Assembly (NCBI GenBank): GCA_010909165.1
Contig: MU008168.1
Location: forward strand, 1,364,001 to 1,428,000
From: Anthoceros angustus
Taxonomy: Eukaryota; Plantae; Anthocerotophyta
Direction: 5' to 3'
DNA: 64,000 nucleotides
In this document: piece by piece, positions 6,416-37,000 of the stretch
How the letters are laid out: every line of letters starts with the position of its first letter
How positions within the stretch are numbered: the first letter of the stretch is position 1
Position numbers and translations under genes: made by a program
Notes under the pieces: model-generated
Database searches by the model: none
Seen by the model: the letters and a program-made list of their open reading frames with translations, nothing else
What the model was told of the DNA's origin: nothing

Positions 6416-7389
6416 GGTGACACACATCCAACGGGTAAGGTTAGCTATATTATCATTATTTATTAAAGAAGCACTTTTATTAAAGCTTCAAGGCTTAAGC
6501 TTCAAATATATATATAAATATAGAATATATAGAGATTTTTCTTGTGACAAGTTATATATATATAAATTTATAAAATTAATAGTTATATAATTTAAACTAC
6601 CATAAATACATAGGATATTGTACATAATTATTGATAAATGATTTATGACAAGCCAAGTTTATATATCATACTTTTCTAGATATATTTCGAGATCCTGTCA
6701 TCGATCATGTTTGTTGATTGATCACCTTGTTCCTTGACTAATTGAAATAGGGGTACAACTCATAAGTAGAATAAAACAAAATTAAAAAGAATTCTTGAGA
6801 ACTGATGTAATATCTAAATTAGTGGCTTCCTCTATATGGATGACACTCGTTTGACTCATTACTCTTTGGTTTTGGAAGACTTGGTGACTTTCACCTACTT
6901 TTCATTTTCACGACATTAATTAAAACTTTTGGACTCTCAATTTCAGCTTTATTGAAACGCTAATCAGTCACTTTAATATAGATCACCTATACTATAATTT
7001 ATTGATATTTATTATAAATAATCATATGATTCATTGATTCAATTTTGGACCCTATCCATTAGCAAGGAGTTCTTGGTAGACAGGTTTGAGCTACATCTAA
7101 ATGACAATCAATCAAGATATGGGAATCGACTCCACTATCTACCTAATTTACTAAATTAAATAAACCCTAATAATCCCAAAGGAATCGTACCCTAAGGTAA
7201 ACCCTAACGAAGATTTAACTAATGACCCTCACCAACGAGGATAAATTGTGGACCCTGAAGGTTTAGTCTACAACCCTTGTGCTTTGTTGTGTTTATCCCT
7301 TTGTGTTTGTTGCGTCTCGAGGAGGTCGACTCGCGCTCACTTCGAGTGCCGCTGGGAGCTTGGACATATCGTCATCGCACGTTCCAGCA

Positions 7390-12410: not shown

Positions 12411-13207
12411 TTTATTTGAAATAAAATCTGGAAACAAATTTATACAAATATGTTACTATAAAATATGGGAACTGTAAGATGTTTCTAGGTTCTTCACAAC
12501 CAATGCAAAATACGATGAACTACCTAATATTACCACATTTTTTACAACATGCCTAGAGAATGTGTTCATATGAAATAGCCACATGGGACGTGAGGCCTTA
12601 TCAAGGGCTTGCCTTTTGGTTTAACACTACTGCTTAAATTTGCTCACCTTGAGCACTGGTACTAATTATACAGCAGGGCATGTAGCCGCACTCACATATT
12701 GTCCAAAGAGATTGGAAGAGGCATGAGCACAAGTATTTAGTGGACACCAACCAAGCTGCGTCAAATCCATGAATTGATCTAATTGAGGCATTTTCTCGTC
12801 TACTAGTTTTCAATTTAAGAGACCTCATCAGACAAATGAGGCAGAAGGGCCTGCTTTTTGGTTTAACAATGTTGCTTGCCTTCTCAATGCCTGGAGAATT
12901 GGTGCCTTCCACAAATAAAGAAGGTGTCTCAGTTGATGATGACGCGAAGGATACCTTCCCTTGGGGGCTGGATCAAGTATAACATGGGCATGATGTGGGG
13001 ATTGAAATTGTATGGACGACCCAGGTGACCTTATGCCTGAGTTTTTGACTCAGCCCTCTGTTTTCCCCGACTCTTGTCCAGCTATGTATGCTCCATCCCT
13101 GGCCTCTTCACCTCAAGCAGCACCTATCTCTATTGTTCCTGCTCGAGAGGGAGAAGATGAACAGGCCATTGTTGATCCTTATGAAAACAGAGAAGACTTT
13201 CGTGCTC

Positions 13208-13240
13208 AACACCATAATATTTGAAGCGGCTGAATATACA
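13208..13240 (+). repeat. Left TIR
   Basis: AACACCATAATATTTGAAGCGGCTGAATATACA, the exact reverse complement of 30209-30241. Confidence 0.95.
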
Positions 13241-13449
13241 AACCCTCTTCCGCAAATCAGAAACCCTCATGTTCAAATCTTGACAGTACCTATAATGCAT
13301 GATTAAGCATGATTTGATTCTAAGGGATGGGTGTTATGTCATCTCAATGCAATTTCACGCATTAGTTAAATCGCCTCTAGTTATGGTGGTTGCCTTGAAA
13401 TAGGCGTTTTGGACGTAAGCCGTTAAAGGCTTTTGAAGGTGAAGAAGGC

Positions 13450-16400
13450 ATGCAGCGCCACCGTACAAATCATTACATAAAACTTTCAACCCATGAACAG
13501 AAAGCGTACCTACTGCACGTCAAAACAAGGGACTCACAGGCCTTGCCCGGAACGCTATCCATGACTACTTCTACGGTCTTGCGCATGATGAGGTCTTCAA
13601 AGTTGTCGTTCTCCTCCATGATATTTCACAGTCCGAGGAGCCACCTCCACAACCGATGGCTTGTGCATTTTGGAGGCCACATCGTGTCCAATGTTTGCTG
13701 CCCAACGTCAAGGATCTCTGATCGGCGCTTTCTCTGGAAGACCCCAAAGAAACAACTTGAGCTTGTGACAAACCTTTTCCGACAATGTCACTTCTTTAGC
13801 CAGGCGGGTTGGACCACGGCGGTGAGGCTCGTGGGTCAACTCCTCATCGGCGTCCGGCAAAACTTCATATCCATGGATCCTCGATGTATGAACTCTGCGT
13901 TGTCCACATCCACGGCAATGCAATTCGACCGCATAGGAGCGACCATCGTTGTCGATCCACTTCACACGTCTAAAATCCAATCTCCCTCCTTCGAGAAGTT
14001 TTGATGATTCTCATCATCGGGCCCAATGGCCTCGACGCACACACCACCAGCTTATCGAGGGATGTATAGCGGCTTCTTCCACGATGTCATGCCCAATGAT
14101 TGCGTCCGTTGTTGAAGGAACCACGGACATTATTGGGGAGCATGGAAATTTTGGCCAACACATGCGATGTTAAGCCCCACCAAGCGTAATGTATTCCACG
14201 ATCGTAGCCCCTAGATTGCATATTAGTCTTGTCCCATACAAATGACACCAACCTCCCCGACCACTTCGCATTGCCTCCCTCACGTGTGGTGCTCCTCCAC
14301 ACCGTGCATGACTATCATCCGTATCTCATCGCAACTTGTCATATCATGGAAAGCATGGAAAACCGTACTCACTGCAAATCATAGTGACATCATGTTTTCC
14401 CTTGTTAAATCCTCGGGGCACATCCATGACCATCAATGTGTATTTCGAATCCATGAAGCCCCTCATGTCAACGATATCCCTTGCCATAACACGGTACTTC
14501 ACAATATTCTCTGTTCGGGCTGAAAGATTGCAGGCCTTCTTCCATGTCCATGTCCGCCATAGCCCTCTGCTCCTCCTCCAAGCCTTTCCAAGTGTGCACT
14601 TCAAGCACAAAAGCTTGAAAAGCGTCTAGTAGTTTCTTCAGGTCATCCACATCCTTTACTTGCTGTAAACGACAAAAGATTATGTCAATATAACGGACGG
14701 ACATTCACTGGAAGGACATTCACAGGACAAAGGCATATACTGGAAGGGCAATGACTGGGGCGCCGGCATGCCGGCGCCCCAGTCGTCGCCATTCTAGAGA
14801 CCTTCTCGAATGGGAGGCGTTGGCGGGGCGCCGGCATGCCATTAAGTCCTCAAGTCTATCACGGACTTGGAGGCTGCTGGACGGCGCCGGCTGCGCGCAT
14901 GCCCTCCCCATTCGGCAGTGCGAAGGAGCACACGGGCGCCGGCATGCCGGCGCCCGGTCAACTCCGTTCCATGGCGGGGGCGGGGCGCGGCCGCGTCGGC
15001 TCTCAAGGAAAGCAACCGAGTGGCGCGGCATGCGGCGCCCTCTCAGAATGGAGGATAAAGGACACCTACCTTTCCCTCAAACGCGCTTTGAAATCTTGCG
15101 ATGACCTCGTCCGTAGAGTGTTGAGGATATTCTTGCGGACTTGGTCGAATGAGTCACACCCCAAGTGTTTGGCCATCGCCACAGATCACATGAAACTTCT
15201 TCCTCGGTGATTTCCTTCGCCATCCCATTGAGGTCCGAAGCCCGTCAAAACCTTCTCTGTTGCACTTATCAACATTTGTTGCCCACTTTCCCAGTGGGAT
15301 GCCTTGAAAACTCCTCCAAGGCTTGCCTTGCATCTCTTTAGGCTTCAACAATGCGCCATCCCCTTGGTCATCGGTGACTTTCGTTTGCCCTTGCTCTTCT
15401 TGCTTGTACTGCTGCAACATGTTTACTTTGTTCGCAACTCCATGGACTCCCACTTGCTGAATATCTTGTCCACATTCGCCCACACTTTGCCTTCCAACCG
15501 AGATGCATAGAATGTGGGTCCTGTTGTCTACCTTGTTACATTTATCTTTCGTCCTCGCCTTGGTCGATCGGTCAAGCACCTTGTACAAGTTGAATTTCCG
15601 GTTCATGGTCATGTTGACACCATCCCTCTTCGCGATTTGCAGCTCGTCTCTCAAATACCTCACACCTCAATAAAATTCATCTTCCGCCTCTTGTCGGACA
15701 TGGTGTTGTGGTCGGTGGCTAAGACTCTCATTTCCGGAATAGTCGACCACAATACACATGAGCCTCAATCCTTTGGAGGCTTGCCTTCCCAGTGATATGT
15801 CCGAGTCTTTGCATAGCATATGTATGGTTTCCTCAAGCACTCCCATCACATATTTTTAGCCACGAACGCCAATCCAGACTTGATATCATTGCATTACGCG
15901 GATCAATCATGCAAAGCGAGGCAAGACTCCTTCCTCGATTCTCCCTTTGAAATCACCACAGCTAGGTAGTTCGTCCAAGCCTCGTCCACTTTTCGGATCC
16001 GGGCATGAGTCGGAAAGCGGTCTCAAGTATTCCAGCTTAACGAGCGGTTTAACCACTTTCTTCCCATATGCGGCTTCTCTAACGGTCTTCAAATAATCCT
16101 CATCCAACGGCGCCTCAACCTTTCTTCATCGATCGACACATGAAGTGTAGGAATATCTTGGATGGCGGATGGCTTGCCCATCATTGTGCCTTTCTTCCTC
16201 CCCATGGTATGCTGGTTCCCCATACCTTTCACATCACATCTGCGGTAGGTGCTTTCCGCTTAGTGTAACATCCGAGGATACTCGGGCACCACCGTAATAA
16301 CTGGGGGGCGCATGCCCATCTGGCACCGCTTCGCTTCGGGTGCATGCCCACCTGCCCCTTCCTCCCGGCCGCATCTGTTCCCACTCCCGGTCACTTGGTT

Positions 16401-17593
16401 GGCTCCGGTTCCAGCGTCTCCATATGTCGGGTGCCGCTTTCCCATGAAGGCACATCAGGCGCGGCATGCGGCGTTCTCGCCGCGCGCCGCGCCAAACACT
16501 TGAGGGTGCAACACGCGCACTCGCGCCTCATCCGCCCCTCCTCTCCCTCCTCGTCTGCATCCCGGCGTATGTCGCTGCAGAGCTGCCGGAGGTTCGGCGC
16601 AAAGTCCATGATGATATCCGCCTCCTTGCATCTTCCCCGCCGGACCCGTCCGCATCCATTGTCCAGAGTACATCGGTATAGGGCCATCTTCCTCGTCGGA
16701 AGGGCCCACTCGCTCATCAACATGAGGAGGTCGGTCCTCAATTGCGAACTCGGCGTGCACTTGTTCTTGGAAGACATCTCCCTCCATGATTAATCGGACT
16801 GTGATGACCCCACAGGCATCTCAGTCTTCACGGCGCAAACAATAGTGTTGAAATGTCGGATATCGGGATGGGGAGGAAGGTGCAGTGAATTTGAAGGCCT
16901 AAGTGGCCCGACACCGGTTTCAGCTTTCTCGAAATTGCATTGCCAGCTCCTTTGGTTCACATTTCTTGGCTTGAAAGCCATCTATCACGAAGAGGAACAC
17001 CTTGTAATCATCGGGGTGTGCGGCAAATTATCAACGCCATAGGGTCTTGATGTGCGAGCACTTGCACCTCCGGATGCAATGTGTCCATCTCCAAACTTGC
17101 CCACAATACCCATCCGGCTCTTGTGATTAAAGCCCCGGGTAGCTGTAACCCACAACTTCAACAAGGGTGTCCATATTGCCCCATCTTCCGTGGCTCACTT
17201 GCAGGTTAGAAACCATTCTTTGTCCAATGCAGCTTTCCTCAACTTTGGCTTGTGTGTCTCCAGATAGTCTCCTCATACGTGTATGGCGATGGATTGGGCT
17301 CGGGTGCTCTTCTTTTGCTCGAGACATTCCACTCTTCTCCTCTGTTCCTCCATGCGCTTTGGTGCTGCTGTCTTTGCTGAATTCGAGACCCGACCTTAGA
17401 ACACCACCTGCGAGTTAAAAAGCACGGAAAAGATGGATTCGATTCACACCAACATGCCTGAAAACGCTCACCGGCAATGGAGATTCGCAACGATCTCCTG
17501 TCGGCGCCTTGATTTCCGCGCCTTCTTGCCTTCACCACAATCCGGGGTTGTCGGCAGCTTCCGGCAGTCTTTCTTGCGCCGTCCACTCGCCAT
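13450..17593 (-). CDS. Multi-exon, frameshifted gene: ParB/Srx-like domain plus beta-class DNA amino-methyltransferase (N6_N4_Mtase-like)
   Basis: ParB-like GNHTYAMQRL...AHVYCG...LATDHN (15700-15835). MTase: ARDIVDMRGFMDSKYTLMVMDVPRG (motif IV region ~14410-14485), FVWDKTN (~14225), KPLGPMMRIIK/NFSKEGDWILDV*SGSTT...RSNCIAVD (motif I region ~13905-14030). GT-AG intron 14663-15069. Gene ends are approximate. Confidence 0.7.
14750..15050. repeat. GC-rich palindrome cluster within an intron
   Basis: GGGCGCCGGCATGCCGGCGCCC perfect palindromes at 14758-14779 and 14933-14956 (24 bp); GCATGCGGCGCC at ~15028. Confidence 0.85.
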
Positions 17594-18967
17594 AATCACC
17601 TGCAATCGGTGACACACACAGTGTGAGTTGGAGCAAAAAGCTAGCGATTGCCACAATACCTTGATTTCGTCGCGATGGCGCCTCTAGCCCTCTGCGTCGC
17701 GCCCGCTCGCCCGAGATGGGATTAGCGCCGAATTGGGCGAGTTGCGCCCAAGGTGCCGCGCGATGGTGTGCTTCCGTGGATTACGCCGCGCCGACCTCCG
17801 TGAGCACTCCGTCGAGCTTCACCAAGAAGCGCGGATGTGGCTCCTCTCGGTTATACCCTTTTTAGAAGCGGACATCCGTAAGAAACCCTAATGTGGTGGT
17901 AGTGAAATATAGACCATCGCCAATATTTAAACCCCAATACCTGTCTTATTTATACCGGATATGACACTATCTCGATCATTACCTTTGTTATATCACAATA
18001 AATGCAATCTATTTTCACTGGATATCCTCGCCGCCACCGAACCATCGATGCAATGGCGGTGGCGTTCTGGTGGTATCTGGGTAGCATGTCTTATGCCCTC
18101 TTAATTGAATAGCGCGCCGTGTTGGCGGCAATAAGAGGGAGGTTTGGTGGTTGAAGACCCATCCGGTATGTTCCAAGCTTGATGTTCGTTTGCTTTGCCG
18201 ATCGTCTAAGTCGGGCACCGCCAAGATCTTGCATTCTATCCATGGCTTGGGCGAGGATGAGGTATTCTCTGAAGTCAACACGGTGATCATTTACGCTACG
18301 AATGTGGGAAGTCATTGCACGTCTGTTTGTTCTAACGCTCCGTTGCGGAGGTCCTTGTTCATGGAGTCCGTGGGTGCAACAAGGTCCTTCTCATTCATGC
18401 GAGAAGAAGAAGGTCTTGGAAGGGACGGGGAAGGAACTCATGTGCACCATCGCTTGGCGCTCCTAACTCAAGCCCGGCACAATCCCTACTAGAAGGTCAT
18501 TTCTTTGATACCCACTCCATGCCTTTGCGAAGACCAAATGTCACAATGGGGATCCTATGTATGGTTCACATTTTCTTGTTTGACTTGAATAGCAAGGTGT
18601 CACAAACGTAGAAATGGTCTTAAGCGTACTTTGTTCCATGGGATGAAACCGATGGTCTTCCTTTGCGAGCTAGGAGAACACACGCGATCGCACCCAAATG
18701 TAGGAATACAGTGTTGCCACCTACTCCCGGAACTTGAATAGGTGTGTGGGTGTGGGTGGAAGCCAGTCGGAGGGAGAAAGGCGGTCGTCGTACAAATCCG
18801 GCCTCCCAAGGGGTGATCGGATCTTTGTTTGCGGGGCAATCACGAACACCGGTATGGTGGGCGACCGGTTCATTCCGTTGTTGATGTGCTGCATACACCT
18901 CAGAGGAAACGAAATGGTGTCTCTTATCAGCCGAAGCCGATGAGTCAGACAATGCAGGCGGAGATAT

Positions 18968-19156
18968 TAATGTTCTTAGAGAACTTGGACAGCGAGAGCT
19001 GAAAGTCTCAAACAAAACTGATTGAATTAATTAAATAAAACAATGTCTCAAGTGTCTTAATACTACAAACCTAAATCAATAGTCACATGAGTATTGGGTA
19101 TATATCACTATGCCTAAATAACCCTAAGGAGTGCAAAGTTAATCCATATCGTAACA
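18968..19156 (-). repeat. Copia 3' LTR
   Basis: Matches 25504-25700; adjacent to the PPT. Confidence 0.9.
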
Positions 19157-19923
19157 CTCCCTCTTAAGCTTCACGAGCTTAGAGTCGTGCGGTCACATGG
19201 TCAGGAATTCATTACGCGCCACCAGCTGAACTCGAGCACAAACGTGCCGGAACTCATAAGATGGCGTGCAATTCCTCTTCACAAGCATCCTGGCAATCAT
19301 CCTGCTTCGCTTGCTTTGCACTCACACAATCTCTGTTGTGGATCGCCATGTCGCAAAGTACTGGCCAGAGCTATCTGCAAGCCGAAGCAGAGAAGCCAAA
19401 AGCTGGTAAAGCAGTCAGACAGAGGACGCCATCGCCGCCAGTTCGGAGAAGCTCCAAGCTCAATACGAGACCGCGCCTGTCAGCTGGGACGAAAGCTGTC
19501 TCATCGGACAGACCATGTCGCTTAGAGGGTACACAATCAGCATGGAAGTGAAACTGCGCTGGGGAAAAACGACTGACTCTACTGGACAACCCCCTTTGAC
19601 GGACGAGGAGGTGAAAGGGGAGATGGACTTGGTTGGACAGCTGCGAGAAGCAGCAGCGCTGTTGAAACAGATAAAAGAGGCAGAAGAGATTGCGGTCGAC
19701 TGCAGCAGGGCGATTAAATCAGCGTAAGGCTTCATCCGCCTGTTGTGACCTTGAATTGTTATTCTCCCACTCATGCTCAGTAAATCAGGAGGCTAACAGC
19801 TGCATGATGTGATCCTTGCAGGAGATAGGAATCCGGCAGTACAGGAGGCTGTTGACGGTGTAATCAAAACATAACCTCGCCATCAGGGAGCACAGGCTCC
19901 CACCCCCATACCCACCAGATAAG

Positions 19924-22900
19924 TTACACTCCTTTCTGTTCCTCTAGCTTATGATAGCTGGTGATGTCCTGCAGCCCTAGTCCTGCCATATGCAAGTAAT
20001 GTCGGTGCTTGGGCAGGGCCTTTGTTAATATGTCAGCTGTATTGTCATCTGTATGCACATAACCTACTTTCACCACACCTCGTTCTACAACATCTCGTAT
20101 GTAGTGATGTTGTATTTCGATGTGCTTAGTCCTTGCGTGAAAACGCGGATTTGCCACTAATGCAATCGCCGACATGTTATCACACTGAAGTAGAGTTGGT
20201 TCTGCCTGCTGTTGTCCAAGGTCCTTAAGAAAAACACGTTCCCACTCGGCTTCCTTGGAGGCATCAGTCAGGCTTTTGTATTCCGCTTCTGTAGAAGATA
20301 GGGCTATAGAAGCTTGCTTTTTACAGCTCCAGCTTATGGCTGCTGATGATAATAGAAAACTGTATGTGGAAAGACTCTTGCGGCTGTCACTATCTGACGC
20401 CCAATCGGCATCAAAACCTCGTAAGGTAAGCTGCTTTCCACCACTGCTTCTATAGCATATGCCATAGTGTTGAGTGCCTTTTAAGTAACGAAAGACTCTT
20501 TTGGCAGCTATCCAGTGAGCGCGTCCAGGACGCTCTAAGAATTGGGAAAGTGTGCTCACAGAGTACTGTATGTCAGGACGTGTCCAATTTCCAACAAAAA
20601 TAAGGCTCCCTACTGCGTGTCTGTATGGAACATCAGCCATTTCCAGTTTCTCTTTCTCTGATTGTGGGCACTGCAGGCTTGTCAGTTTAACACCCATGGC
20701 TGATGGTGTAGTCAGCTGGTCTTGCTTGGTCCAGCTTAAACTTGACTAAGATGTCTTGTATATACTGGTACTGATGTATTATCAAGAGGCCTTCTGATCT
20801 GACACGAAGCAACTGTATGCCTAGGCAGAATCTCAATTCCCCGATGTCTTTCATCTCGTATTTACAGCTTAACATAGTTTTGACTTCTTCTAACAACTTC
20901 TTGCTGTTGGCAGCTAGGATAACGTCGTCGACGTACAAGGCAAGGACAACATACTCTTGTCCTCTTGTGAGTCTGTAAACATTACCATCAGCTGCACTTT
21001 GCTTGAAAGATCTACTTAGAAGGTACAGATGAATGTTGAGATACCAAACTCTGCCGCTTTGTTTCAGACCATAGATAGTCTTTAGCAGTTTGCATACTTT
21101 CTTTGGACAGGTCTTGTCTTCGTATCCCTCAGGTTGAGTCATGTATAGGTCCTCGTCTAATGCCCCATATAAGAATGCAGTGCAGACATCCATTTGGTAT
21201 AGTTCCAGGTCAAATTCTGCTGCCAGGGCAAGGATCATCCTTATTGACTGAGATCTAACAACAGGAGAGAAAGTCTCCTGATAGTCTAAACCTTCAACCT
21301 GTGTGAAGCCCCTGGCGACTAATCTCGCTTTGTACCTAGCTATCTCTCCCTTCTCATTTAGTTTTAGCTTAAAGACCCACTTACAGGAAATGGGTTTTCT
21401 GCCGGATGGGAGATCTACCAATTTCCAGGTCTGGTTCTTTACAAGGCTATTAAACTCATCATCTACAGCAAACTTCCATTTGTCTTTTTCTGGACTTGTG
21501 AAGGCTTCTGTTAGTGATTTGGGTTCTAAGTGAATTGTTGTTGATGCAGCATGGACAGCCTGGGCATATGAAGTACGGAAATCAATGGATTCATATCTGG
21601 GTTCTGTCCATTGATCTGGAGGTGGCCTGTTACGGCCAGATCGCCGGGGAGGTGGATCTGGTGCAGGACCATCAAGTGGAAGTTCCTCTTCAGCATAAAA
21701 ATCATCATCCTGTCCAGGTATTTCCATCTCATCAGGATTAATAGGCTCGTTTTGACCATCTTGCACTTGTTCAGCGTGTTCCTGGATATCTGGATCCTGC
21801 GGAATAGGATCCTGGATGTATGGATCCTGCGGAATAGGATCAAGGTTTGCTGGAGCTGTATTGACATTTGCTGGGATTGCATTTACAGGAGTAAGTCCTG
21901 TTTCGTCTGGGAAGTCAGATTCAGATGTTTCTTCTGTCTCCAGATGTGCTCCCTCAGCAGTTGAATTGGCTCCCTCTGAATCCAGATGTTGCGGATAACC
22001 AGGAGTGACAGGGCTGGTGGGCTCGAGGAATGTAACAGATCGAGCAAGAACAGCAGTCTGAGTGAGAGGATTGAAAAGCTTGTAGGCTTTCGATATCTCA
22101 CTGTAGCCAACAAATATGAGGGCTTGAGCACGGGGATCTAACTTTCGTCGTTTCTCTTCAGGTACAAGGCAAATGCTCGTGAGCCAAAAACTCGGAGATG
22201 AAGCAAGCTGGGTTTGCGGTTCCACATAGCTTCATAAGGAGTCTTCAACGGGACGGAGCTGGTAAACAATCTGTTAAGTACATATGTAGCAACTATAGCT
22301 TGCCCGAAATTTCGAGGTAAGCACCCACAAAGCATCTTTGCGTGTCATAGATAAGAGAGTTTGATTTTTACGTTCCGCGCGTTTCTTTGGGGTGTGTAAG
22401 GCAGTCGATTGTCTCTGACACCATGTTCTTGTAGAAAGCGCCGTGTTTACAAATTACATGCGTGTCGATGCGTAGATACTTAACCAATTTCCCTGTTTGG
22501 CGTTGTATAGTGAGGAACCAGTCCTTGAATAAGTCAAAGGTCTCACTTTTAAGGTGCAAGATGAATGTCCAGGTATAACGCGAGTAATCATCTGTGATAC
22601 ACAGGTAATAGAGGGCACCACCAATAGATGGCACATGTATCTTGCCTGATATATCAGCATGTACGAGCTCAAGGACATCCTTTGACCTGTATGACGCCAC
22701 ATGGGGAAAAGGGTGCTGCTTTTGCTTCGCTATAATGCAAGCCTCACAGGAAGGGAGATCTTTGAAACAACGAGGTAAAGGTTCCTGATGACATTCCTGT
22801 AAAGACATATCTACCAGTTTGTTTTGTTTACGTGACACAGCCGGGCATGCCAGAGGACTGCTAATTTTTGTGTGTCTGTGGACGCCAGGCCAGCCACCGC

Positions 22901-24327
22901 TTATGTGTAAAGACATCAAGCCTGTAGAGATCATTTTCAAGAATTCCACGAAGACATACAAAGACGGGTCTGTGTGTCTAAAGAACAAACAAGTATCCTC
23001 TGCAGCCTTCATGTGGTAAGTCCTCAATTGCATTAACTTGCTTAGAGACATCAAATTCTTAGCCATTGATGGTACATAAAGCACATCTTGCAAGGTCAGA
23101 ATGGATCCATCATGAAGACTGAATTTACAGATACCTTGTCCTTGTATTTGCAAACTTGATCTGTTCTGCTCATCACCCAGTAGCACAGTTGCTGAGGATA
23201 GGCTTGAATCGAGTATATAGAATTGATCTATGTCTTTGCATATGTGCGAGGTTGCACCGGAATCAAGATACCAGCTACCCTCTTTGTGCACAGAACGGGC
23301 AAGGGAGACAGTGAGGATCTTCACTGTAGGTTTGTTGTCACCTGACTGTTTTTCCCTGATAGCAACATTCGCAGTGCTCTTAGTAGCACGTTGAGGTTCC
23401 CCGGCTTTCTTCTTCTTACATTCTCTGGCCCAATGGCCAGCAATGCCACACCAGTTACAGTTCCCTGGTCTCTTCGAAGTTGAAGAACCATCAGGTCTGC
23501 CAACAAAAGGTGGTTTTCCTTTGCCTTTTCCCTTGTGAGGTCTGAAACCTGCTGCTAATACCTTTTCTGCTTTGTTTCTAGGAACGCCAGCAGACATTAG
23601 GCGTGACTGCTCTTCTTGGTATAAGGCACCAATCACCTCTTCGACAGTGACTGTGCTTGCCGAAGTACCAGCAGCACCAGCAGGCTTAATAGGCCCATTT
23701 TGGGTTGTGACAAAAGACTGATACGATGGGGGCAAGCTAGAAAGGAGCTTTGCAACTGCTTGCACCTCTGGTATCTTCTCACCAGTCAGTGAAGTAATCT
23801 GAGCTCTTAAGTGTCGAAATCTGCTAGTGTGAGACGACATCTTTTCTCCTTCCCTCATCCTCAATGTGTAGTACTGCATGCATAGACAAGGTCATCATGT
23901 TACGGATTACGATATGTCTTTTCCAGTTGTGCCCAGATGGCAGATGCTTCCGCGAGGAACTCAATATCTGGAACGAGATCAGTATCAAGACCATTGATGA
24001 GAAGAGCAATAGCAATGCTATTGTGTTGATCCCATTTTCAATATCGCGGTGTCGATTGGTTGTAACATTGGGATCCGGTTTCTTGTAGGTTCCATCTATG
24101 ATGTTCCATACACCACGAGCCAACAATGTTGTCTTCATGCGTACACGCCAAACCGAGTATTTGTTTCCGTTGAAACGATCTTTCTCTTTCAATTCGGAAG
24201 TAAATGTAGGACCGGAAGCTCCTGACATGATGTTAATGGATTGTACAGGAGATGGCTGTTGCAAACTAAGAGACTGGAACCGCTGTTCAAGCGAGTTCAG
24301 CAAGACATCAATGGACCCTATGGACAT
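19924..24327 (-). CDS. Copia gag-pol polyprotein (few frameshifts)
   Basis: gag FNGNKYSVWRVRMK; knuckle CNWCGIAGHWAREC; protease WYLDSGATSHIC; integrase LELVHADISG/ITDDYSRYTW; RT YKARLVARGF/LYVDDVIL; RNase H SWSCKKQ...LSSTEAEY. Confidence 0.95.
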
Positions 24328-25503
24328 AAATACTTACAAAGACGTATAAGAGCTATGGCTCTTAACAATCCAGGTAAGTATCTATGCGTTAAGGACAGCT
24401 AAGTGAACTGACCGTAGTATGCAGGGAAGGTCTAATGGGAGGGCTTAGCTTGGAGGGTAACAGGTGCGTTGCATCTGGGACTCTTCATGCTAACCTCCCC
24501 GTCAAGGTCTTCTCTCTGTGCATGGACGTTAGTTCATGAAACGGGACACAAAACGAAACGTCATGACAGCTTATTTTTGGTTAGTAACACCGCTTGAGTT
24601 AGTAACGTTTCAGTTTCTTGACCTAACTGTCATGTCCCTCTGTGATGAACAGGTATGTCTGAACAAGATGGACCTATCAGGATACAGAGGGAACAAAAAT
24701 GGTGAGAGGGCACCATCTGAATGTGTCGATTCAGATCTGGCTGTCCTCTCGCACCATCGCTGTGCGCTCCCGCTTGTCGTGTGCAGCGGAAATTTCAGGC
24801 CTCGGAGCCATCTCCAAAAGAAGGAATTGGAAAGCAAACTCCCTCGTCAGGCTGATGCATTAAATCTCCTCTTGTTGCAGAATCTGATCCTCGCAATTGT
24901 TTGGAGATGTGCTATTTCAGCGTCGGTCATACGCCCTCAATTAGCCAAGAGGGTTGTTCAGTATCTGTCCGGAGCTCTTCTACTCTGTTCTTCAGTATCT
25001 CCTGATTAGAAAGCAACAATGAAAGTGTTTTCTCCACACGGGTGACAGTTTCAAAAGTCTTGTTAACTATTCTCTGGATGTTTTGATTCTTGTGTGGAAA
25101 GTTGTGCTGATCACGTTGCACTGTTGCGGCTCTTGGTCGAAACAAAGATTCAACAGGAGGTAGAGCCCGAGGTTCGAAATGAAGATTGGGATTTTGTCCT
25201 CTCTGCTGGCAACGTGCTCTGTACAGGAAATCAGTATTGTGATTCCTGTTTATGTTGCACGTCGCTGATCTTCGACCTGAGTGTCTATCTGCAAATTGCC
25301 TTAGAATAATTTCGGGATAATTCTGCTCATATAGGTCTAGTACAGTTTCTGTAGGTACAAACTGATGATGCCTATTTGGTTGTCTTCCTTGACGACCAAG
25401 GCTATTCGTACCTGCAAAATCTGCACCCCTAGCAGAATATCCCTTTCGAGGCATTGTGCATAGGGATTACTAAGATGCAGAGCACATGGGCTCTGATACC
25501 ATA

Positions 25504-25700
25504 TGAATGTTCTTAGAGAACTTGGACAGCGAGAGCTGAAGGTCTCAAACAAAACTGATTGAATTAATTAAATAAAACAATGTCTCAAGTGTCTTAATAC
25601 TACAAACCTAAATCTGAATAGTCACATGAGTATTGGGTATATATACGGCCTATGCCTAAATAACCCTAAGGAGTGCAGGTTAAATCCATATCGTGAGGCA
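25504..25700 (-). repeat. Copia 5' LTR
   Basis: Matches 18968-19156; adjacent to the tRNA-Met PBS. Confidence 0.9.
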
Positions 25701-28700
25701 GATATTCCGATTCAAAGGCGAGCAGCAGTGTCTCTTCTACAGCCCGTGGCCACGCCCATGTGGTGATTTATGGCCATCTCTTTGCAACAAGTTGTGTCTT
25801 CCTATTTTGTCAAGGGATGGTCTTGAGCAGAGGACAAGGTTCTTGAGGCTAGGCGGTAGGAGGGAGTTATTCCTTCAATCTCTTGTTAGACGGATGTGAA
25901 TGCCAAATTCGAGACAAGGTTGTCACCTACATTATGGGAGAGCCCCAATGCTGTTTGCACGAAAGCATTTTCGAGTTCTGCATAGGCTCGCAAGATACGA
26001 CGAGTTGAAGAGCAGTATTCTTGAGCGCACCTTGGGATGGGGCCAAGCCGAATCCTCGTGTGCAATCCTCACATGCTCTTCTTTGCGATCGCGTGGATGG
26101 ACTCAACATTTCTTCTGTTGGCAGAAAGGTTGCCCAACGTTGTAGTGTACAACCTTCCGGACACATTCACGAAACTTGAGGTTTGGAATCGATTATCATC
26201 GACATGGAACAAGTGGCTGCGGTTTGTGTCATATGCATATTTCACGAGGCTATGGACGAGAAAATTTTAAGAGGGTGAAAATTCAAGTCCAACGGTTTTC
26301 GACATGTGCGTTATCGCGGGGTTGAAATACAACATCCGAGATCTTGGTCATCGGATTGATCAAATGCTGACATGGTTCTCCGTCATTTCACATAGAATCT
26401 TTGTAATAGGTATCATACTCTTTCGGAGAGCTAACCCTCTAGCGTCGCCGTAGATGCAAAGGCGTGGAATATCGCCGCCCACACGGCGGCGGCCATGTTG
26501 GAGCCATGGAATGAAGCGGCGACATCAGGTGCCTTCGAAGTGCGCGCAGCGCTTCGATGAGACGCCGCGTCGCGCCGGGAGCGGCGCGCATGCGGCGCCA
26601 TGCCAAGTCCGCGGCGTGCCACGGAAGCGCGGAGTGCGGCGCCCTCGGCGCCGGCATCCCCGTCTGAGGGCGCGCATGCGGCGCCCTCTCTGCGGCGGCC
26701 TGCTCTGGATGGCGCGTCGGGTAGGGCGGCGCGTCGGGTGCCGCCCTACCGGTCGGTGCATCCGGCGCCGCCGGATGGGGAGCGCCGGCATGCGGCGCCC
26801 CGTGGTGCGCCGCATGCGGCGCCCTTCCGGTCAGCATTGCCGGATGGGAGGCGGCAGCGGCGGCAGTGGGCAGCGCGCATCGGCGCCTACCATTCGGCTT
26901 CATCCACGGATGGGAGGCGTGGCAGCGGCGCGTCGAGAAGCGCCGGCATGCGGCGCCCTACCCACCGGTCATTGGCCCCACATCCGCGCCGGATGGGGCG
27001 TCAGCGGCGCCCCTCCCGATCGGGTTAAATGTCGGCGCCACGAAGAGTCGTCTCGGCATAGTTGCACTGCCGGATGGTTGGGCGCGAGCCTTCCTCCGCC
27101 ATGCCTATGCCGGTGGAATGATATTGGCCGGTGCCTCGATGACATGTTTCCGGCATGGTTGGGGAATAAAATGTTTGTATTTTTTAATGGGCTAACCCAT
27201 TGTAGGAACTAACCCATTGTCCTTTCTAAGCGGTTCGGTCTTGTGTTTAGCGGATGCATATCGGGGCGCTTTAAATAAACATCGAACACGGTTGATGAGC
27301 GAGAGGAAGAAGTTGATGAAGCATCGCACTAAAAGCTACATCCTCGAAATACATATTACTATGCATTGACGGGATGGATCAGAAGAAGACGGAGTTGCCG
27401 CATATTTTGAGATGGCGAAGGACCTGAAGGAGGACTGCCGCATAGCAGTCCACGTGGTGGGCTGCATGGTACACAATTATACTTTGAAAGCCAGGGCGTA
27501 TCTCCACTTTGCGAATCTGAGGAATGATGCAAACTTGACTATTGCTATTATTCAGGACGTTATCCACACGTATAATGGGTTCCTTCCGAAAATTCTATAT
27601 TTGCAGCTGGATAACACATGCCGGGAGAATAAGAACCAGTTGCTTTTTGCGTACCTCAATATGCTTGTTGAGGTGGGCACCTTTGAAAAGGTGAAGGTCG
27701 GATTTCTCCTCGTGGGGCATACACACGACCAAGTGGACGGATGTTCTCTTGCTTTCTAAACATCCAAGCACAAGGAGGTGAAAACCCTACCGACTATGGA
27801 AACCTTGATAACCGCAGTATCGCCCAACCCGGAGGTTCGGTGTTGACCGAGGTTCGGATTTCCGGACGTATGTCTGGCCTATAACAAAGGGCGCAGCAGG
27901 ATATCAGTACAAGGCTGCAGTGAAACAATTGAACAATCTATCGTTTCAACATCAGTTCAAAATCACACGAGAGGCAGATCGTGGGAAGTATGATTATCCG
28001 AGTAGCGATTCAACCTCTCCTCAGTGGGAGTCAGAAGATGGCTTGGAGTTCCTGACGTTTGTTCCGAACAGCGATATTAGCCCGGCACCTTTGATGGCGC
28101 TCCAAGCCAAGGACAAAAGAGGTGGTGTTGCGGGGATGACTGCTATTCAGGGGGTTGCTTACTTGCGGAAAGGAATGCTAAATCTACCAACATATGTCAA
28201 TGACGAAGAAGAACAATGGTGGACAATGTTCTGGAAGGATCAGGAGGAGATTGCATGTATCGTAGACAACAATATTGGTCTTGTGCTGGAAAAACCATGG
28301 AAGTAGTGCGGCGAGCAGCGGCCGGCGCAACTCCTTGTCCACCTCCGATGGCGGTTGTTGTTCTAGATGAAGCATTGTTGCGGAGATTCCCCAAAGGGAC
28401 ATGTACTTAGGACCCCACCGAGTGCGATCGTCAAGGACAAGAGTGTGAAAGGATGAATGGGGATATCATGGAGATAGAGAAAGGCATGTTCATTATAACG
28501 CCTTGTGAGGGTGACATACACATGAGCTTTCGGCTCGCAAAGGTTGTGGAAGTCCATTTCACCGCACTGATCCTTACTTACTTGTGCATTGGTGGAGGGA
28601 CGGACCACAGGGCCTCTGAAGGGAAGTATATGGCGGAAGTCATCCTCGAGTTGAGAGCAGCGAAGGGTCACCCGAAAAGGAAGGGGCAAACAACACAATC

Positions 28701-28750
28701 CACCTAATATACAAGTTATTCGTTCGGAAAAGCAGTTATCGTTTATTATG
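25701..28750 (+). CDS. Sola-like DDD transposase (frameshifted; N-terminus probably continues upstream of the copia at <18967)
   Basis: AERLPN...LP..TK.EVW...VS...F..LW...F, RVKI..RFSTC (26110-26320). After intron 26410-27250: CIDGMDQKKTELPH (D ~27368), LQLDNTCRENKN (D ~27610), LLVGHTHDQVD (~27710-27738). Confidence 0.75.
26430..27130. repeat. GC-rich GCATGCGGCGCC / GCGCCGCCGGAT motif cluster within the transposase intron
   Basis: At least five copies of GCATGCGGCGCC (~26588, 26674, 26787, 26813, 26946), inside GT(26410)-AG(27250). Confidence 0.8.
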
Positions 28751-29550
28751 GGTTCAAACGAGCATGAGGAAACATCTGTCTGTCTTGACAAGCGATCAAA
28801 GAGAAGATGAGTGCTCTGAGCCCACCTCAAGCCCCAACCCCGGATGGTGTAATGGGCGATGAATCGTGACCGACATATGTCAATGACGAAGAAGAACAAT
28901 GGTGGACAATGTTCGAAGGATCGAGGAGATTGCATGTATCGTGAACAACAATATTGGTCTTGTCTTTGGAAAAACCATGGAAGTAGTGCAGAGCAAGGCG
29001 CAACTCAACATCCACCTCCAATGGCGGGTTGTTGTTCTAGATGAAGCATTGTTGCGGAGATTCCCCAAAGGGACATGTACTTAGGACCCCACCGGTGCGA
29101 TCGTCAAGGACAAGAGTGTGAAAGGATGAATGGGGATATCATGGAGATAGAGAAAGGCATGTTCATTATAACGCCTTGTGAGGGTGACATAGCTTTACGG
29201 CTCGCAAAGGTTGTGGAAGTCCATTTCACCTTTGATCCTTACTTACTTGTGCATTGGTGGAGGGAGACCACAGGCATTGTCTGAAGGGAAGTATATGGCG
29301 GAAGTCATCCTCGAGTTGAGAAACGGCGTCACCCGAAAAGGAAGAGGGCAAACAACACAATCCACCTAATATACAAGTTATTCGTTCGGAAAAGCAGTTC
29401 GTTTATTATGGGTTCAAGGTGAAGCAGAGGAAACATCTGTCTGGCTGACAAGAAAGCGATCAAAGAGAAGATGAGTGCTCTCTGAGCCCACCTCAAGCCT
29501 GCAACCCCGGATGGTGTAATGGGCGATGAATCAGGCGTGAAGCCGACATA
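28190..29550 (+). repeat. ~680-bp tandem duplication of the transposase 3' region
   Basis: 28190-28871 repeated at 28872-29550; the copies differ mainly by indels; ACATAT microhomology at the junction. Confidence 0.9.
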
Positions 29551-30208
29551 TATCGCGGGAGGGACTCGAGTCGAGCGAGGAATGATCGGAATATGTGCCT
29601 TGTTCCGTACGGGTTTGCAAGGTGCCTTGTCCTGACCACTCGGAGGAAGCAACTTTTGTTCATTTTGTATGTTCGCGTCCACGATCGTGTGCCGTCGGCA
29701 AATGACTAGTCCTTTAAGGCGGTGCGATGCGGTTAAAGCTTGAAGAAGTGAGTCCTCTGATTGGCATCGAAAGTCATTCAACGTTGGGCGCCACGCAGGA
29801 CAAGTCCTTCGGGCGGACGTGGCGCCGGCATCTGGCGCCGGATCGGCGGTTCTTCCGTTCGGCCGTCCTTTTAACCGTTCTTGTTGTTCAAAACCTCGTC
29901 CACCATGTGCATATATGGGTGTATAGCAAGAGTATATACATATGTACGCATTCCCTCAAAGGGGCCCTGTGGTTGCGGGGTCGTTAACGGATCCTAATCG
30001 TATCGCATGGTCTAAGGACATGGGCATCGTTTCTAGCAAAACAATGCTCGTGCGATTAGGCGGACCCTTCTGTCACGGTGTGCGATATAGCATGTATAGG
30101 GCGGTCACGACCTGCAATACATGCCATCTTGCAGTGTATGCTCAAATATGGCCTGTCGATACCCATCGAAACCACATTTGCCGTATATTCAGCTGAAAAG
30201 CCGCTTCA

Positions 30209-30241
30209 TGTATATTCAGCCGCTTCAAATATTATGGTGTT
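30209..30241 (-). repeat. Right TIR
   Basis: Exact reverse complement of 13208-13240; a subterminal ATATTCAGC copy lies at ~30185. Confidence 0.95.
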
Positions 30242-31088
30242 GCTCTTAATTCTCAAGATTCAGAGACTGTTCCTGCTCCACCTTTAACTATGTTCCTTAA
30301 ATGAGCTTGCCTTCTCAATGCCTAGAGAATTGGTGCCTTCCAAAAAGGCATGCAGCTGCACTCACACATTGAGCACTTGCTGGACAACTACTTGATCAAC
30401 ATATATGCAAATGCCGTGCAGTGGAAGATGCATGCCAAGTTTTTGGCAGCGTGTAGGCGAGATTAGCCATGTCATTATCGTTTACTAAAGAGAACAAAGA
30501 TGGTCGAAGTCCCTGGACTGGTGCCCCATCGTGGGTTGTCCCCTTTCGCCTCGGGGTAGATGGGATTTCCCATCTCGTTCTTTTTATGAAGTCTCTACAT
30601 TCCACTAAAGAGAACTTTTGGTAAAGCTACTTCTAAAGTTTCAAGTATATACATATAATATGTAATATTTTCCTTGAAATAATTTTATACATGTAGATAG
30701 ATATATTGAAGACTAAATCTGGAATCATTGTTATCTCCATCATCTTTGTTCTCTCCGAGGTCCTTCTTTCCAATGGCTTAGTTGGTTATCCTTGTTTTTG
30801 CTTAGTGAATACTCCATTTTGCTAGCGTTTGTACCCGGACTTTTGGTTTATCCTATTTAATGTGATCACTATTTACCAAAAGAAAAACTATTAGGTGTGG
30901 TATGTGCAAGTGTGCTAATGAGCTAGTATATAGTGTGCCTAGTGCATGTAACCCACATTTTATGGGAGTGTCGTGTTCCCTCTCAATAAAGGCTCAGCTT
31001 TTTTTCTTATATATGAAATCAGAGCCATGTTCAAGAGCCTTGTAGAGTCCTCTTGGCACTAATGGCTGGATGCTTGAGCCAAGTCCTG

Positions 31089-32158
31089 TTGCATAGCTCT
31101 TAGCCTTGTGCTTGTGAGAGCTTGTGTGCAATTGCATAGCTCTTAGCCTTGTGCTTGTCGACTTGTGTGCAATTGCATAGCTCTTAGCCTTGTGCTTGTG
31201 AGAGCTGGTGTGCAATTGCATAGCTCTTAGCCTTGTGAGGAGCTGGTGTGCAATTGCATAGCTCTGTGCAATTGCAGCTCTTAGCCTGTGCTTGTGCAGT
31301 GCAGCCTTGTGCCTCAGCTAGCTGTGCAATTGCATAGCTCTTGGCCTTGTGCTTGTGAGGCTTGTGAGGCTTGTGTGCATTGCATAGCTCTTAGCCTTGT
31401 GCTTGTGAGAGCTCGTGTGCAATTGCATAGCTCTTAGCCTTGTGCTTGTGAGAGCGTCACAGGTGTGCAATTGCATAGCTCTTAGCCTTTTGCTTGTGAG
31501 AGCTAGAGTGTGCATTGCATAGCTCTTAGCCTTGTGCTTGTGAGAGCATGTGTGTCATTGCATGGCTCTTAGCCTTGTGCTTGTGACAGTGCAATTGCAT
31601 AGCTCTTAGCCTGTGTGCTTGTGAGAGCATGTGTGTCATTGCACAGCTCTTAGCTATGCCTTGTGCCTTGCATGCAATTGCATAGCTCTTACTTAGCCTT
31701 GTGCTTGTGAGAGCATGTGTGTCATTGCATAGCTCTTAGCCTTGTGCTTATGAGAGCTTGTGTGCAATTGCATAGTTTTTATAAGGCCTTGTGCTTGTGA
31801 GAGCTTGTGTGCAATTGCATAGCTCTTATAAGGCCTTGTGCTTGTGAGAGCTTGTGTGCAATTGCATAGCTCTTATAAGGCCTTGTGCTTGTGAGAGCTT
31901 GTGTGCAATTGCATAGCTCTTATAAGGCCTTGTGCTTGTGAGAGCTTGTGTGCAATTGCATAGCTCTTATAAGGCCTTGTGCTTGTGAGAGCATGTGTGC
32001 AATTGCATAGCTCTTAGCCTTGTGCTTGTGAGAACTTGTGTACAATTGCAAAGCTCTTAGCCTTGTGCTTGTGTGCAATTGCAAAGCTCTTAGCCTTGTG
32101 CTTGTGTGTAATTGCAAAGCTCTTAGCCTTGTGCTTGTGAGAGCGTCTGTGCAATTGT
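31089..32158. repeat. 43/47-bp tandem array, ~25 copies
   Basis: Unit gagcttgtgtgcaattgcatagctcttagccttgtgcttgtga, with a 47-bp ataag variant block near 31780-31990. Confidence 0.95.
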
Positions 32159-34077: not shown

Positions 34078-37000
34078 TTATGATCTGCGGCCGAAGGGAG
34101 CGAGAGGGCCGGGCGGGCGGTGTTGGCGAGCCAAGGGGTTCAAGTGCCTTAGCAGGCTGCCAAGCACAGATCGTGTCTTGCTTTTGCCAATGCCAGCTCC
34201 GTCGAGATGCGATGCGGCATGTGCGCCTCCTGCAATTCGCTGTTGCGACAGATGCATCTGGGCATAGGTTGCGGGAGTGGAGCAGTGGGAGTCGGAGGCG
34301 CTGCTGGAGTTCTCCATCTCGCTCTCGCTGGCCAGGTAGCAGTAGTCGTCGGAAGCGCTGGGGAAGCGCTGATGCCGTTGTAGCGTCCCAGAGTAAGAAA
34401 GCGAGGTTATGGCGGCCAGATGCGACAGCAGCAACCTGGCCTTGCCTTGCGCCCTGAGAGACCCCTCCACCGACAAAGCAATCAGAGCAGGCACCACGCC
34501 TTCTTCCTTCACCAGCTGGCTATGGTACGCGCTGTTGCCGCACAGCATCCACAGCGTGGCGGCCGCGTGCTCCTTCTCCTTCTCCGACCCGCTGTCTGAG
34601 TCTAGGGCATCGCAGAGCACGGCCAGAGTTCCGTTGGTGCCGGCTATGGTGTCCCGGCCTTCCTTGGCGGACGAGAGGCTGTAGAGCAGGGCCACGCATT
34701 TCTCCCGGATGCTGGATGCGGAGACGGCGGGGTCGTCCAGGGACGGAGACTCGCCGTAGTCTCCGGTGGCAAGGAGGCGAGTCAGAACGCGGACTGCCCC
34801 GGCTCGGATCACCCGCTGCCTGTTGCTCATGGAGATGCTCAGGTTGATGAGCGCAGTCAGCGCGTCCTTGCATCCCTGCTTGGAACCCCGCCGGAGGACG
34901 TGCACCAGCTGGCTGATGGTGCCCCGGGTTGATCCCATGTGAGCGTGGTTCTCCGGAAGGCAGGAGAGGGTGAGGAGAGCCGCCACCGCAGCTTCCTTCG
35001 TCTTGGCCCCAGCCTTTCCCCGGAGAAGCTCCACCAGCTCCGGGACCGCGCCCGCGGCCACAATGGCGGCCTTGTTCTTGTCGTTGTTGATGCCGAGGTT
35101 GAGGATTGCGAAGGCCGCCATCTCCTGTGCCCGGCGGAGGCTGGCCGGCTCGACATGCAGCTCGTGGTGGATGGCGGAGTGGAGGAAGGCTACCAGGGCA
35201 GGGATCAGGCCTGGGGACGTGGATCCTGTTCTGTTGCTGGAATCCGCCTGCCCTAGCTCTGCTCTGGCGTCGGCGTTCACCTTGGTGAGGATGCGGATCC
35301 TCTCTGCTGCCTGGGACTGGCGCTCCAGGGAGTCGCTCAGCAGCTCCTGCACCAGATGCTGGACCAGTTCCTGCGCTGAGTCGCTCCTCAGATCCGAGGC
35401 TGTTGTGCCGATTGTGCCGAAGGAGACCCGGTCCTGCAAATCCAGAAGAGGAGACCGGGGGTGCGGGGATCCGGACCCGCTGGATTCCGCAGATTCCAAG
35501 GGGCCCCCGTGAGGATCAGAGAAGGCCTCGAAGCTCTTGGTGCGGCGTGAGGAGCTGCCTCTGCCGGTCGGGTTTATCTGGAGCTCAATTTTCCTCCTCT
35601 CTAGCAGCGTCGTGTACTCCCCGGGCGGAGCACGTCCTGCAACGAAGGGCCGGCAGTATGGCGTGAGCGGGAGGATCTGTTGGAAGTTCCCGACCAACTT
35701 GGTCCTTTCTGTCAGAGCTGTGCCTTGCAAGAAGCGCGACGTGAAACGTGAAGGGAAACGGCAGAAGCGAGAAGTGTTACCTGGAGGATTCTCGTACGTG
35801 GAGCTATGCTGCTGTGATGGCGCACTCGAATGCTTGTCAGGACTAGAGTGATTGTCACTTGCTGGCACTGCATCACAGCTGTCCACCAAGCGCCCTGCTA
35901 CGGATGATCCTGCATCACCTACCCTAACCACAGAAAGATCTCCGTTGCTGCTCGTCTCCGGATCCCCCCTGGCAGCACCTCGCCCTTCAGAGTGTGTGAC
36001 CTTCCAAAGCATGTCGGTGGATGCTGTCAAGGGTTGCAACAGATGAGCGTCGCGAGCAGGGCCTTGGCTGGGCATGTTCTCATCCTTCTCTTCATCAAGC
36101 CTGTTGGCAGTTGATCCTCCGGACTCCAGGTGGTGGCAGTCGGAAGCATGTGTCGTTCTAGAAGATGTCACGTCCATGGCAGTGCAATTGACAACCTGAT
36201 TTACCAGATCTCTCCCCCCAATTCTATCGACAACTTCACCCTTGGAGCTGCTGCCATTATCAACAGCACCACCGCCTGCGTCACAGGGTGGAGAAGCACG
36301 CATGGCGTCCACGACGCCTAGAGCAGGCGCCGTGCTCTCTAAGTCTTCCCTGGTGATGCTGCAACTCAAGCCCTGATCCTGCCCTTGAGCAGCCGCTTCC
36401 TGCGTAACCTGACTTCCCTGTGCTGCCATTGAAGGGATAATAGCAACGTGACCGAGATGATGGTGGACTGGGCTGACAACATCTGTTACCAGATGTGTTG
36501 AAGCAGTAAGTAGTTGCTGGAGTCCTTGTGTTGGATCCTGTACAGACTTGCCGGAGTCACACCCAGAAACAGCTTGATCAGTATGAGGCAGCGGAGAGGG
36601 TGGAGGAGGCCCGCCCTCTGTAAGAGCACCACAAAAGTCCTGCCCTATACTCCGGCGCATCTGTAATTCGCTGCCGTCTGCAAGAGCACCATCCAGCAGC
36701 GCAAGGGACGATGGATGTCCCCACCATTCCAATTTTTCTTCAGGGTTGCGTCCGGAAGGCCGGGTGGCATCAGCCCTGGCAGGTAGGCTGCCTGGATCCG
36801 CACCTGTAGCAGCATACGACCTAATAAGGTGCGGAGAAGGAGCAGGCACATTATTGTCCGACTCTCTCCAACTTCCCTGCTGATGCAAATTAACAACGCG
36901 TGGCTGGGTGATGTCAGTGGGCCCTGGATGGGCTCTGGGCCCTGAGTCTGGAGAATCCTCCACCGCTCTCCTCCAAAGCGCGTGAACAGGAACAACCTCG

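Follow-up and report, generated by a model that had tools for sequence, protein, structure and literature searches.

Does a land-plant DNA transposon carry a DNA methyltransferase (MTase) gene of its own as a lasting component? This question is raised by a 64,000-nucleotide stretch of Anthoceros angustus DNA (assembly GCA_010909165.1, contig MU008168.1, positions 1,364,001 to 1,428,000), referred to here as the window, in which positions 13208-30241 form a 17,034-bp element bounded by terminal inverted repeats (TIRs). Transposons with their own DNA-modifying enzyme are rare and bear on how mobile elements escape from, or exploit, host epigenetic control. The window element is very probably a defunct member of a class II (TIR) transposon family in which the gene for a DUF7869 transposase is divergently paired with one for an amino-MTase. 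A first-pass annotation of this locus proposed that a land-plant transposon encodes an epigenetic writer. At the level of the family this holds: a land-plant cut-and-paste transposon family, with intact relatives in Riccia sorocarpa, carries a divergently paired beta-class DNA amino-MTase gene. For the window copy it does not, since both genes are pseudogenes and this copy therefore cannot write any mark.

Ends and genes of the window element

The perfect 33-bp TIRs and the GCTC target site duplication (TSD) reported by the first-pass annotation are both present. The inverted repeats match at 33 of 33 positions and form the single such pair in the window, with 0 expected in shuffled sequence. 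The signature AACAYCnnnnnnTTTRAA is common to the window TIR and both ends of an intact Riccia element, L001. The TSD is 4 bp long in all three complete elements (GCTC in the window, TCTA in L001 and ATAG in a second Riccia element, L012). Termini of the family begin 5'-AACA, and the TIRs of L001 and L012 are homologous to that of the window. TIRs, a TSD of fixed length and an internal RNase H-like DDE/D transposase, which define class II TIR elements, are all found. In the right subterminal region (30174-30241), part of the TIR is repeated just inside the terminal copy ('TATATTCAGC...GCCGCTTCA'). The ends of the element and the remnants of its two genes, the minus-strand segments being located with a family-specific profile hidden Markov model (HMM), are as follows.

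13204-13207, no strand: left TSD copy GCTC, matching 30242-30245
13208-13240, plus strand: left TIR, 33 bp, beginning 5'-AACACC, perfect inverted match to the right TIR
13863-14514, minus strand: beta-class MTase domain remnant (pseudogene)
14003-13863, minus strand: motif I segment 'GDWILDV*SGSTT...NCIAVDVD' (HMM positions 622-634 at 14003-13965 and 638-671 at 13961-13863)
14363-14295 and 14263-14189, minus strand: further MTase segments ('VWDKTN')
14514-14401, minus strand: motif IV segment ('...YTLMVMDVPRGFN'; HMM positions 445-483)
15100-15764, minus strand: remnant of the N-terminal module ('LGGNH'/'DDNAD')
15420-15295, minus strand: N-terminal module, HMM positions 263-298
15494-15432, minus strand: N-terminal module, HMM positions 253-273
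15743-15669, minus strand: N-terminal module, HMM positions 174-198
25938-26348, plus strand: transposase N-terminal remnant with in-frame stops
27268-28300, plus strand: transposase catalytic core, DUF7869, with motifs IDGMDQKKT, LQLDNTCRENKN and VGHTHDQVD
30209-30241, minus strand: right TIR, 33 bp, 100% complementary to the left TIR
30242-30245, no strand: right TSD copy GCTC, matching 13204-13207

Homology to the transposase is limited in the window to the two plus-strand segments listed above. An open stretch at 27370-27756 (plus strand) matches Pfam DUF7869 with E=5e-34, and 2,562 homologues are found among 1.84 billion representative proteins, the top ones being 50-58% identical. A literature search for DUF7869 found no papers. 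In the family alignment three aspartates, D423 (IDGMDQ), D504 (LQLDN) and D546 (GHTHxxID), are nearly invariant. In the AlphaFold model of P0008, a homologue from Riccia, the core reaches a predicted local distance difference test (pLDDT) score of >90. Searched against the PDB, this core gives generic RNase H-fold matches only (RNase HI, IstA and integrases; E ~1e-3), and the fold search singled out no transposase superfamily. The DUF7869 transposase possesses an RNase H-like fold and probably a D-D-D active site, and labeling it a DDD transposase is reasonable. The window gene is a pseudogene. At approximately 27403-27412 a frameshift makes IDGMDQKKTELPH (frame 2) overlap AKDLKEDCRIAVHVVG (frame 1), segments that are contiguous in homologues, and an in-frame stop at 27757-27759 directly follows GHTHDQVD. 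The plus-strand transposase gene described previously is present, but not as an intact spliced gene.

The minus-strand gene, a homologue of a gene encoding an N-terminal module followed by a beta-class MTase domain, spans about 13863-15764 and was found only with the family-specific HMM, which was built from Riccia accessory proteins. Six colinear minus-strand matches in the left arm of the element form a chain that scores 35.6 bits. Significance was judged from 200 dinucleotide shuffles of the sequence, which gave a mean of 0.8 bits (standard deviation 1.4) and a maximum of 11.5; a minus-strand gene therefore exists in the window. Weaker HMM matches are located between the main ones in the chain, and a possible extra piece of the N-terminal module at ~16125-15910 was recognized by eye only.

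General searches of the left arm were empty, as would be expected if the minus-strand similarity were a chance resemblance and the arm were non-coding filler of a non-autonomous element. Pfam searches with all six-frame stop-free pieces of at least 28 amino acids (aa) from both arms gave no MTase and no ParBc match, phmmer searches of the PDB with two left-arm pieces gave no match, and a homologue search with a 170-aa left-arm piece found none. The window element contains no usable-frame match to the (D/N/S)PP(Y/F/W), FxGxG, HPxxKP or ParB regular expressions, a null result explained by the family motif IV, which reads D(I/V)PY. Comparison of the L001 MTase region with the window element by tblastx gave nothing significant; homology to L001 was recovered only by tblastn at word size 2 and by the family HMM. 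Chance resemblance is nevertheless extremely improbable given six matches on the same strand, in the correct order and with a chain score far above every shuffle. In addition, the matched segments are the most conserved motifs of the family (YTLxxxDxPxGF, VWxKTN, GDWxLD and NCIAVxxD), and they are placed and oriented with respect to TIR and transposase as in L001 and L012.

The window MTase gene is a pseudogene with frameshifts and an in-frame stop. Three segments that form a single exon in Riccia sit in three different frames, separated by gaps of 38 and 32 nucleotides. Motif IV reads MDVPRGF compared to ADxPYGF in the family, arginine replacing tyrosine, so that the aromatic residue is gone. 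Motif I reads GDWILDV-TGA-SGSTT compared to GDWxLDLCxGSGTT, with the TGA stop at 13964-13962 and one glycine missing. An intact S-adenosylmethionine-binding motif I of the FxGxG type is consequently present in the Riccia copies but not in the window, where the order of motif IV followed by motif I is nonetheless kept. The first-pass annotation was therefore right about a minus-strand homologue of beta-class MTases, as the HMM chain shows, but the gene is not an intact spliced one. The window copy is a fossil whose value lies in pointing to the family and in providing evidence for it beyond Riccia sorocarpa.

Intact relatives in Riccia sorocarpa

The main lead is provided by relatives at four loci (L001, L004, L005 and L012) of the Riccia sorocarpa assembly GCA_046195345.1. 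The entry point was P0008, a homologue of the transposase: divergently upstream of its gene lies a 689-aa gene that matches PF01555 weakly. A DUF7869 transposase gene and a gene for a beta-class amino-MTase of ~690 aa are divergently paired at all four loci, across lineages that are just 30-50% identical in protein. One element end was found for L005, and both ends are present for two elements.

L001, 4297-15227: element with imperfect TIRs beginning AACAYC and TSD TCTA
L012, 3166-12807: element with imperfect TIRs beginning AACAGC and TSD ATAG

The exons of the L001 MTase gene encode 'YYVLGGNHTAAA' and motif IV 'LAIADIPYGF' followed by motif I 'LLDLCAGSGTT', the order of the beta class. The same order, ADxPYGF ahead of DLCxGSGTT, is found in L005 and in P0157, a full-length accessory protein of 693 aa. 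The sole Pfam match of P0157 is N6_N4_Mtase (PF01555, E=1e-11), and its match to phrog_67, annotated 'DNA methyltransferase', spans motifs IV to I (E=1.4e-18). PDB matches are CcrM (E=1.6e-4), DpnA, M.MboIIA and M.RsrI, and the NCBIfam match is the CcrM model.

Between L004 and L005 the accessory gene differs at a proportion of 0.10-0.21 of nonsynonymous sites (pN) and 0.80-0.86 of synonymous sites (pS), the latter being saturated. The Riccia MTase gene is under strong purifying selection, and the low pN compared to the saturated pS indicates that the accessory gene was retained by selection during diversification of the elements. The intact Riccia copies show that the pairing of transposase and MTase is old and conserved. 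Its presence at four of four loci across such divergent lineages, combined with purifying selection, rules out a one-off capture. The linkage check proposed with the first-pass annotation, run here on the Riccia relatives, thus gave a positive answer, with the MTase gene next to the transposase gene at every locus and L001 and L012 bounded by TIRs and TSDs.

The MTase gene could alternatively be a host gene or a recent capture beside the transposase rather than a component of the element, which would fit the distant DUF7869 loci that carry no MTase and an association found in only one other species. This is highly improbable. The MTase gene lies within the TIR/TSD boundaries of three elements (window, L001 and L012), and the divergent arrangement recurs in lineages with only ~30-50% protein identity. 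Divergence of the transposase and of the MTase is similar in size, and the protein is conserved even though synonymous sites are saturated.

The last MTase exon of L005, which contains motif I, is present twice (3229-3810 and 4608-5306) and suggests a local duplication or rearrangement.

Palindrome arrays and proposed function

All three complete elements contain lineage-specific palindromes, which represent candidate binding or methylation sites. In the window they survive as remnants, with one cluster between the two parts of the MTase gene.

14720-15100, no strand: GC-rich palindrome block GCGCCG(G)CATG(C)CGGCGC, between the N-terminal-module and MTase-domain remnants

Copies in this block lie at 14760, 14936 and 15023, with more at 16459 and 26807. 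The L001 intron at the equivalent position is likewise filled with palindromes. L001 possesses 18 copies of TGTATGCGCGCATACA between 4565 and 14864, and L012 possesses 28 copies of CCATGAnnnTCATGG between 3617 and 12573 (0.04 expected), in both cases only inside the element. Some of the L012 copies are arranged in 27-bp arrays, both inside the MTase gene and upstream of it. The palindrome differs by lineage, being CCATGAnnnTCATGG in L012, TGTATGCGCGCATACA in L001 and the block sequence given above in the window.

In intact members, the transposase would cut and paste the element while the accessory protein would methylate DNA, most likely at N6-adenine. The MTase may act on the DNA of the element itself, probably directed to its palindrome arrays. 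These arrays could be bound by an element-encoded protein, be it the transposase or the MTase protein through its N-terminal module. Such methylation might mark the element or regulate transposition or silencing. N6-adenine is favoured over N4-cytosine as the modified base because motif IV is of the Asp type and the nearest named enzymes are CcrM, DpnA, MboIIA and RsrI. Taken further, liverworts and perhaps other plants may harbour an undescribed lineage of self-marking DUF7869 transposons whose fusion protein binds lineage-specific palindromes and deposits N6-methyladenine (or N4-methylcytosine, 4mC), a possibility that we put forward tentatively. If true, self-marking could serve to control transposition or to counter host silencing by 5-methylcytosine (5mC) and histone H3 lysine 9 (H3K9) methylation, and these elements would be a possible route of amino-MTases into plant genomes. 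With intact Riccia proteins and obvious candidate target sites, the idea is directly testable.

The MTase domain might also be inert even in intact copies and act as a DNA-binding or regulatory module only, as in DIRS1, whose MTase domain is a precedent for an inactive transposon MTase domain. The presence of Ile or Val in motif IV at a position where nearly all amino-MTases have Pro is consistent with such inactivity. We consider an inert domain rather unlikely, given that motif IV keeps its Asp and Tyr, and motif I its canonical GSGTT, across lineages and that the gene is strongly constrained.

A further alternative is that the accessory protein is an N4-cytosine MTase, related to Marchantia DN4MT1 or even its source. 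In favour of this, both proteins belong to the beta-class PF01555 enzymes and occur in liverworts, and a tie to eukaryotic N4-cytosine writers had been drawn in the first-pass annotation. This tie is not borne out, and an N4-cytosine enzyme is very unlikely. MpDN4MT1 has a TSPPY motif whereas the family has D(I/V)PY, a distinction made by description of the motif, and the top named matches of the family are adenine MTases. DN4MT1 is moreover described without extra N- or C-terminal domains while the accessory protein possesses an N-terminal module of ~300 aa. MpDN4MT1a/b and the bdelloid N4CMT share with the accessory protein that they are eukaryotic PF01555 amino-MTases, and DN4MT1 is likewise from a liverwort, but both are host genes outside transposons with a TSPPY-type N4C motif, again set apart by description. 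The pairing described here does occur in liverworts, where the non-canonical mark 4mC has a proven role.

The N-terminal module is conserved within the family and carries LGGNH and DDNAD motifs. Its only reminder of ParB/sulfiredoxin proteins is the 'LGGNH(S/T)xAA' box, and Pfam, PDB-profile, PHROGs and NCBIfam searches provide no support for the 'ParB-like' label given to the gene earlier, even in the intact relatives.

Several observations weigh against a transposon family with an active MTase as a general component. The similarity of the window MTase is weak, with a top single segment of 12 bits, and is unseen by public profiles. In intact copies, the canonical motif IV (D/N/S)PP(Y/F/W) is absent, the first Pro being replaced in D(I/V)PY, and this departure leaves the predicted MTase activity unproven even for them. 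The N-terminal module finds no match in Pfam, PHROGs or NCBIfam, nor in the PDB with a nine-sequence profile at E values up to 10, and the structure model of P0157 (pLDDT 44) is too poor for a fold search. Among distant metagenomic DUF7869 loci, some are too short and others lie next to different genes (PhyH, JmjC-like) and lack an MTase, so that the pairing may be confined to liverworts. Finally, the analysis covers a single copy of the element from the window genome.

Close known systems include those of red algae. In Bostrychia, Plavaka elements carry PAG2 (a PF01555 N6A methylase with a SET domain) and PAG3 (ParB-like with a 2-oxoglutarate (2OG) oxygenase), and Zisupton, Mutator and Fanzor-encoding elements with such accessory genes are found in other red algae (bioRxiv 10.1101/2025.02.11.637652). 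Inverted-repeat arrays adjoin PAG3 and were proposed to be binding sites of an element-encoded protein (bioRxiv 10.1101/2025.02.11.637652). Both systems are eukaryotic cut-and-paste transposons with a PF01555 amino-MTase gene and internal inverted-repeat arrays near the accessory gene, represented here by the 28 copies in L012, the 18 in L001 and the remnants in the window. They differ in the transposase, DUF7869 here as opposed to EnSpm/Plavaka in the algae, and our elements have a 4-bp TSD and a land-plant host. According to a Pfam scan, P0157 contains neither a SET nor a 2OG domain. The MTase is instead fused to its own N-terminal module, and the two systems are likened by description and not by MTase homology. 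The idea, which the first-pass annotation could not confirm as undescribed, has a 2025 red-algal precedent in transposons with PF01555 and ParB-like cargo, while the transposase and the host are different. A conserved transposase/amino-MTase pairing in land plants would extend the red-algal finding to embryophytes.

Fungal KDZ/Plavaka transposons carry TET/JBP genes (bioRxiv 10.1101/2025.02.11.637652) and are likewise DNA transposons with a stable cargo gene for a DNA-modification enzyme. That enzyme is a dioxygenase acting on 5mC in contrast to the amino-MTase described here, and the transposase family is different. The survey of eukaryotic adenine MTases by Iyer et al. describes clades associated with ParB from algae, chytrids and haptophytes, but none from land plants and none located in transposons of this kind. 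Compared to phage and bacterial beta-class MTases (CcrM, DpnA, M.MboIIA, M.RsrI; phrog_67), the family shows the same order of motif IV followed by motif I, its motif I region matches PF01555 and the entire domain aligns to phrog_67. Unlike these enzymes, it is encoded by a eukaryotic gene with introns, has D(I/V)PY instead of DPPY, possesses a novel N-terminal module and lacks a restriction partner. The transposase recalls the Sola superfamily, which reportedly combines a 4-bp TSD with a DDD transposase. This likeness, by description only, lies in the 4-bp TSD of three elements and in the three nearly invariant Asp residues and RNase H-like core of the transposase. To our knowledge, no MTase cargo exists in Sola.

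A metagenome contig (L009, 2177-19724) encodes a distantly related DUF7869 protein of 1,395 aa, whose gene apparently has no introns. Large open reading frames (ORFs) beside it match PhyH, an OTU-like peptidase and a JmjC-like domain, indicating that other DUF7869 elements may carry dioxygenase-type cargo in place of the MTase.

Nested insertions and genomic surroundings

Two rearrangements inside the window element were overlooked in the first-pass annotation, and host genes are found on both sides of the element.

7248-8728: F-box/beta-propeller protein
18968-25700, minus strand: nested Ty1/copia long terminal repeat (LTR) retrotransposon, 6,733 bp, with gag, zinc knuckle, integrase and RVT_2 in copia order
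28181-29532, plus strand: tandem duplication of ~675 bp, 90% identical, in the transposase 3' region
34078-37524: 1,147-aa ARM-repeat ORF (plant U-box type)
49480-50391: X8-domain protein
55093-56385: UMP synthase (PRTase and OMP decarboxylase)

The retrotransposon makes up 40% of the 17-kb element and lies between the transposase and MTase genes, where it arrived later; without it, the element is about 10.3 kb long. The features of a Ty1/copia element are all present, namely LTRs (about 190 bp, 94% identical), a 5-bp TSD (GATAT at 18963-18967 and 25701-25705) and the order of gag, integrase and RVT_2. Its gag, integrase and reverse transcriptase ORFs are long.

The DNA around the element is that of a plant, with PUB-ARM, X8, F-box and UMP synthase genes. 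Excision of the element had been thought to rejoin a flanking ORF. Its removal lengthens this ORF only from 70 to 84 aa, and since 46% of random 21-codon stretches in the window are open, the rejoined ORF is uninformative. Just to the right of the element, at 31818-31980, a unit of ~47 bp containing CATAGCTCTTATAAGGCCTTGT is repeated in tandem, and its inverted complement occurs within the copia element at 24336-24357.

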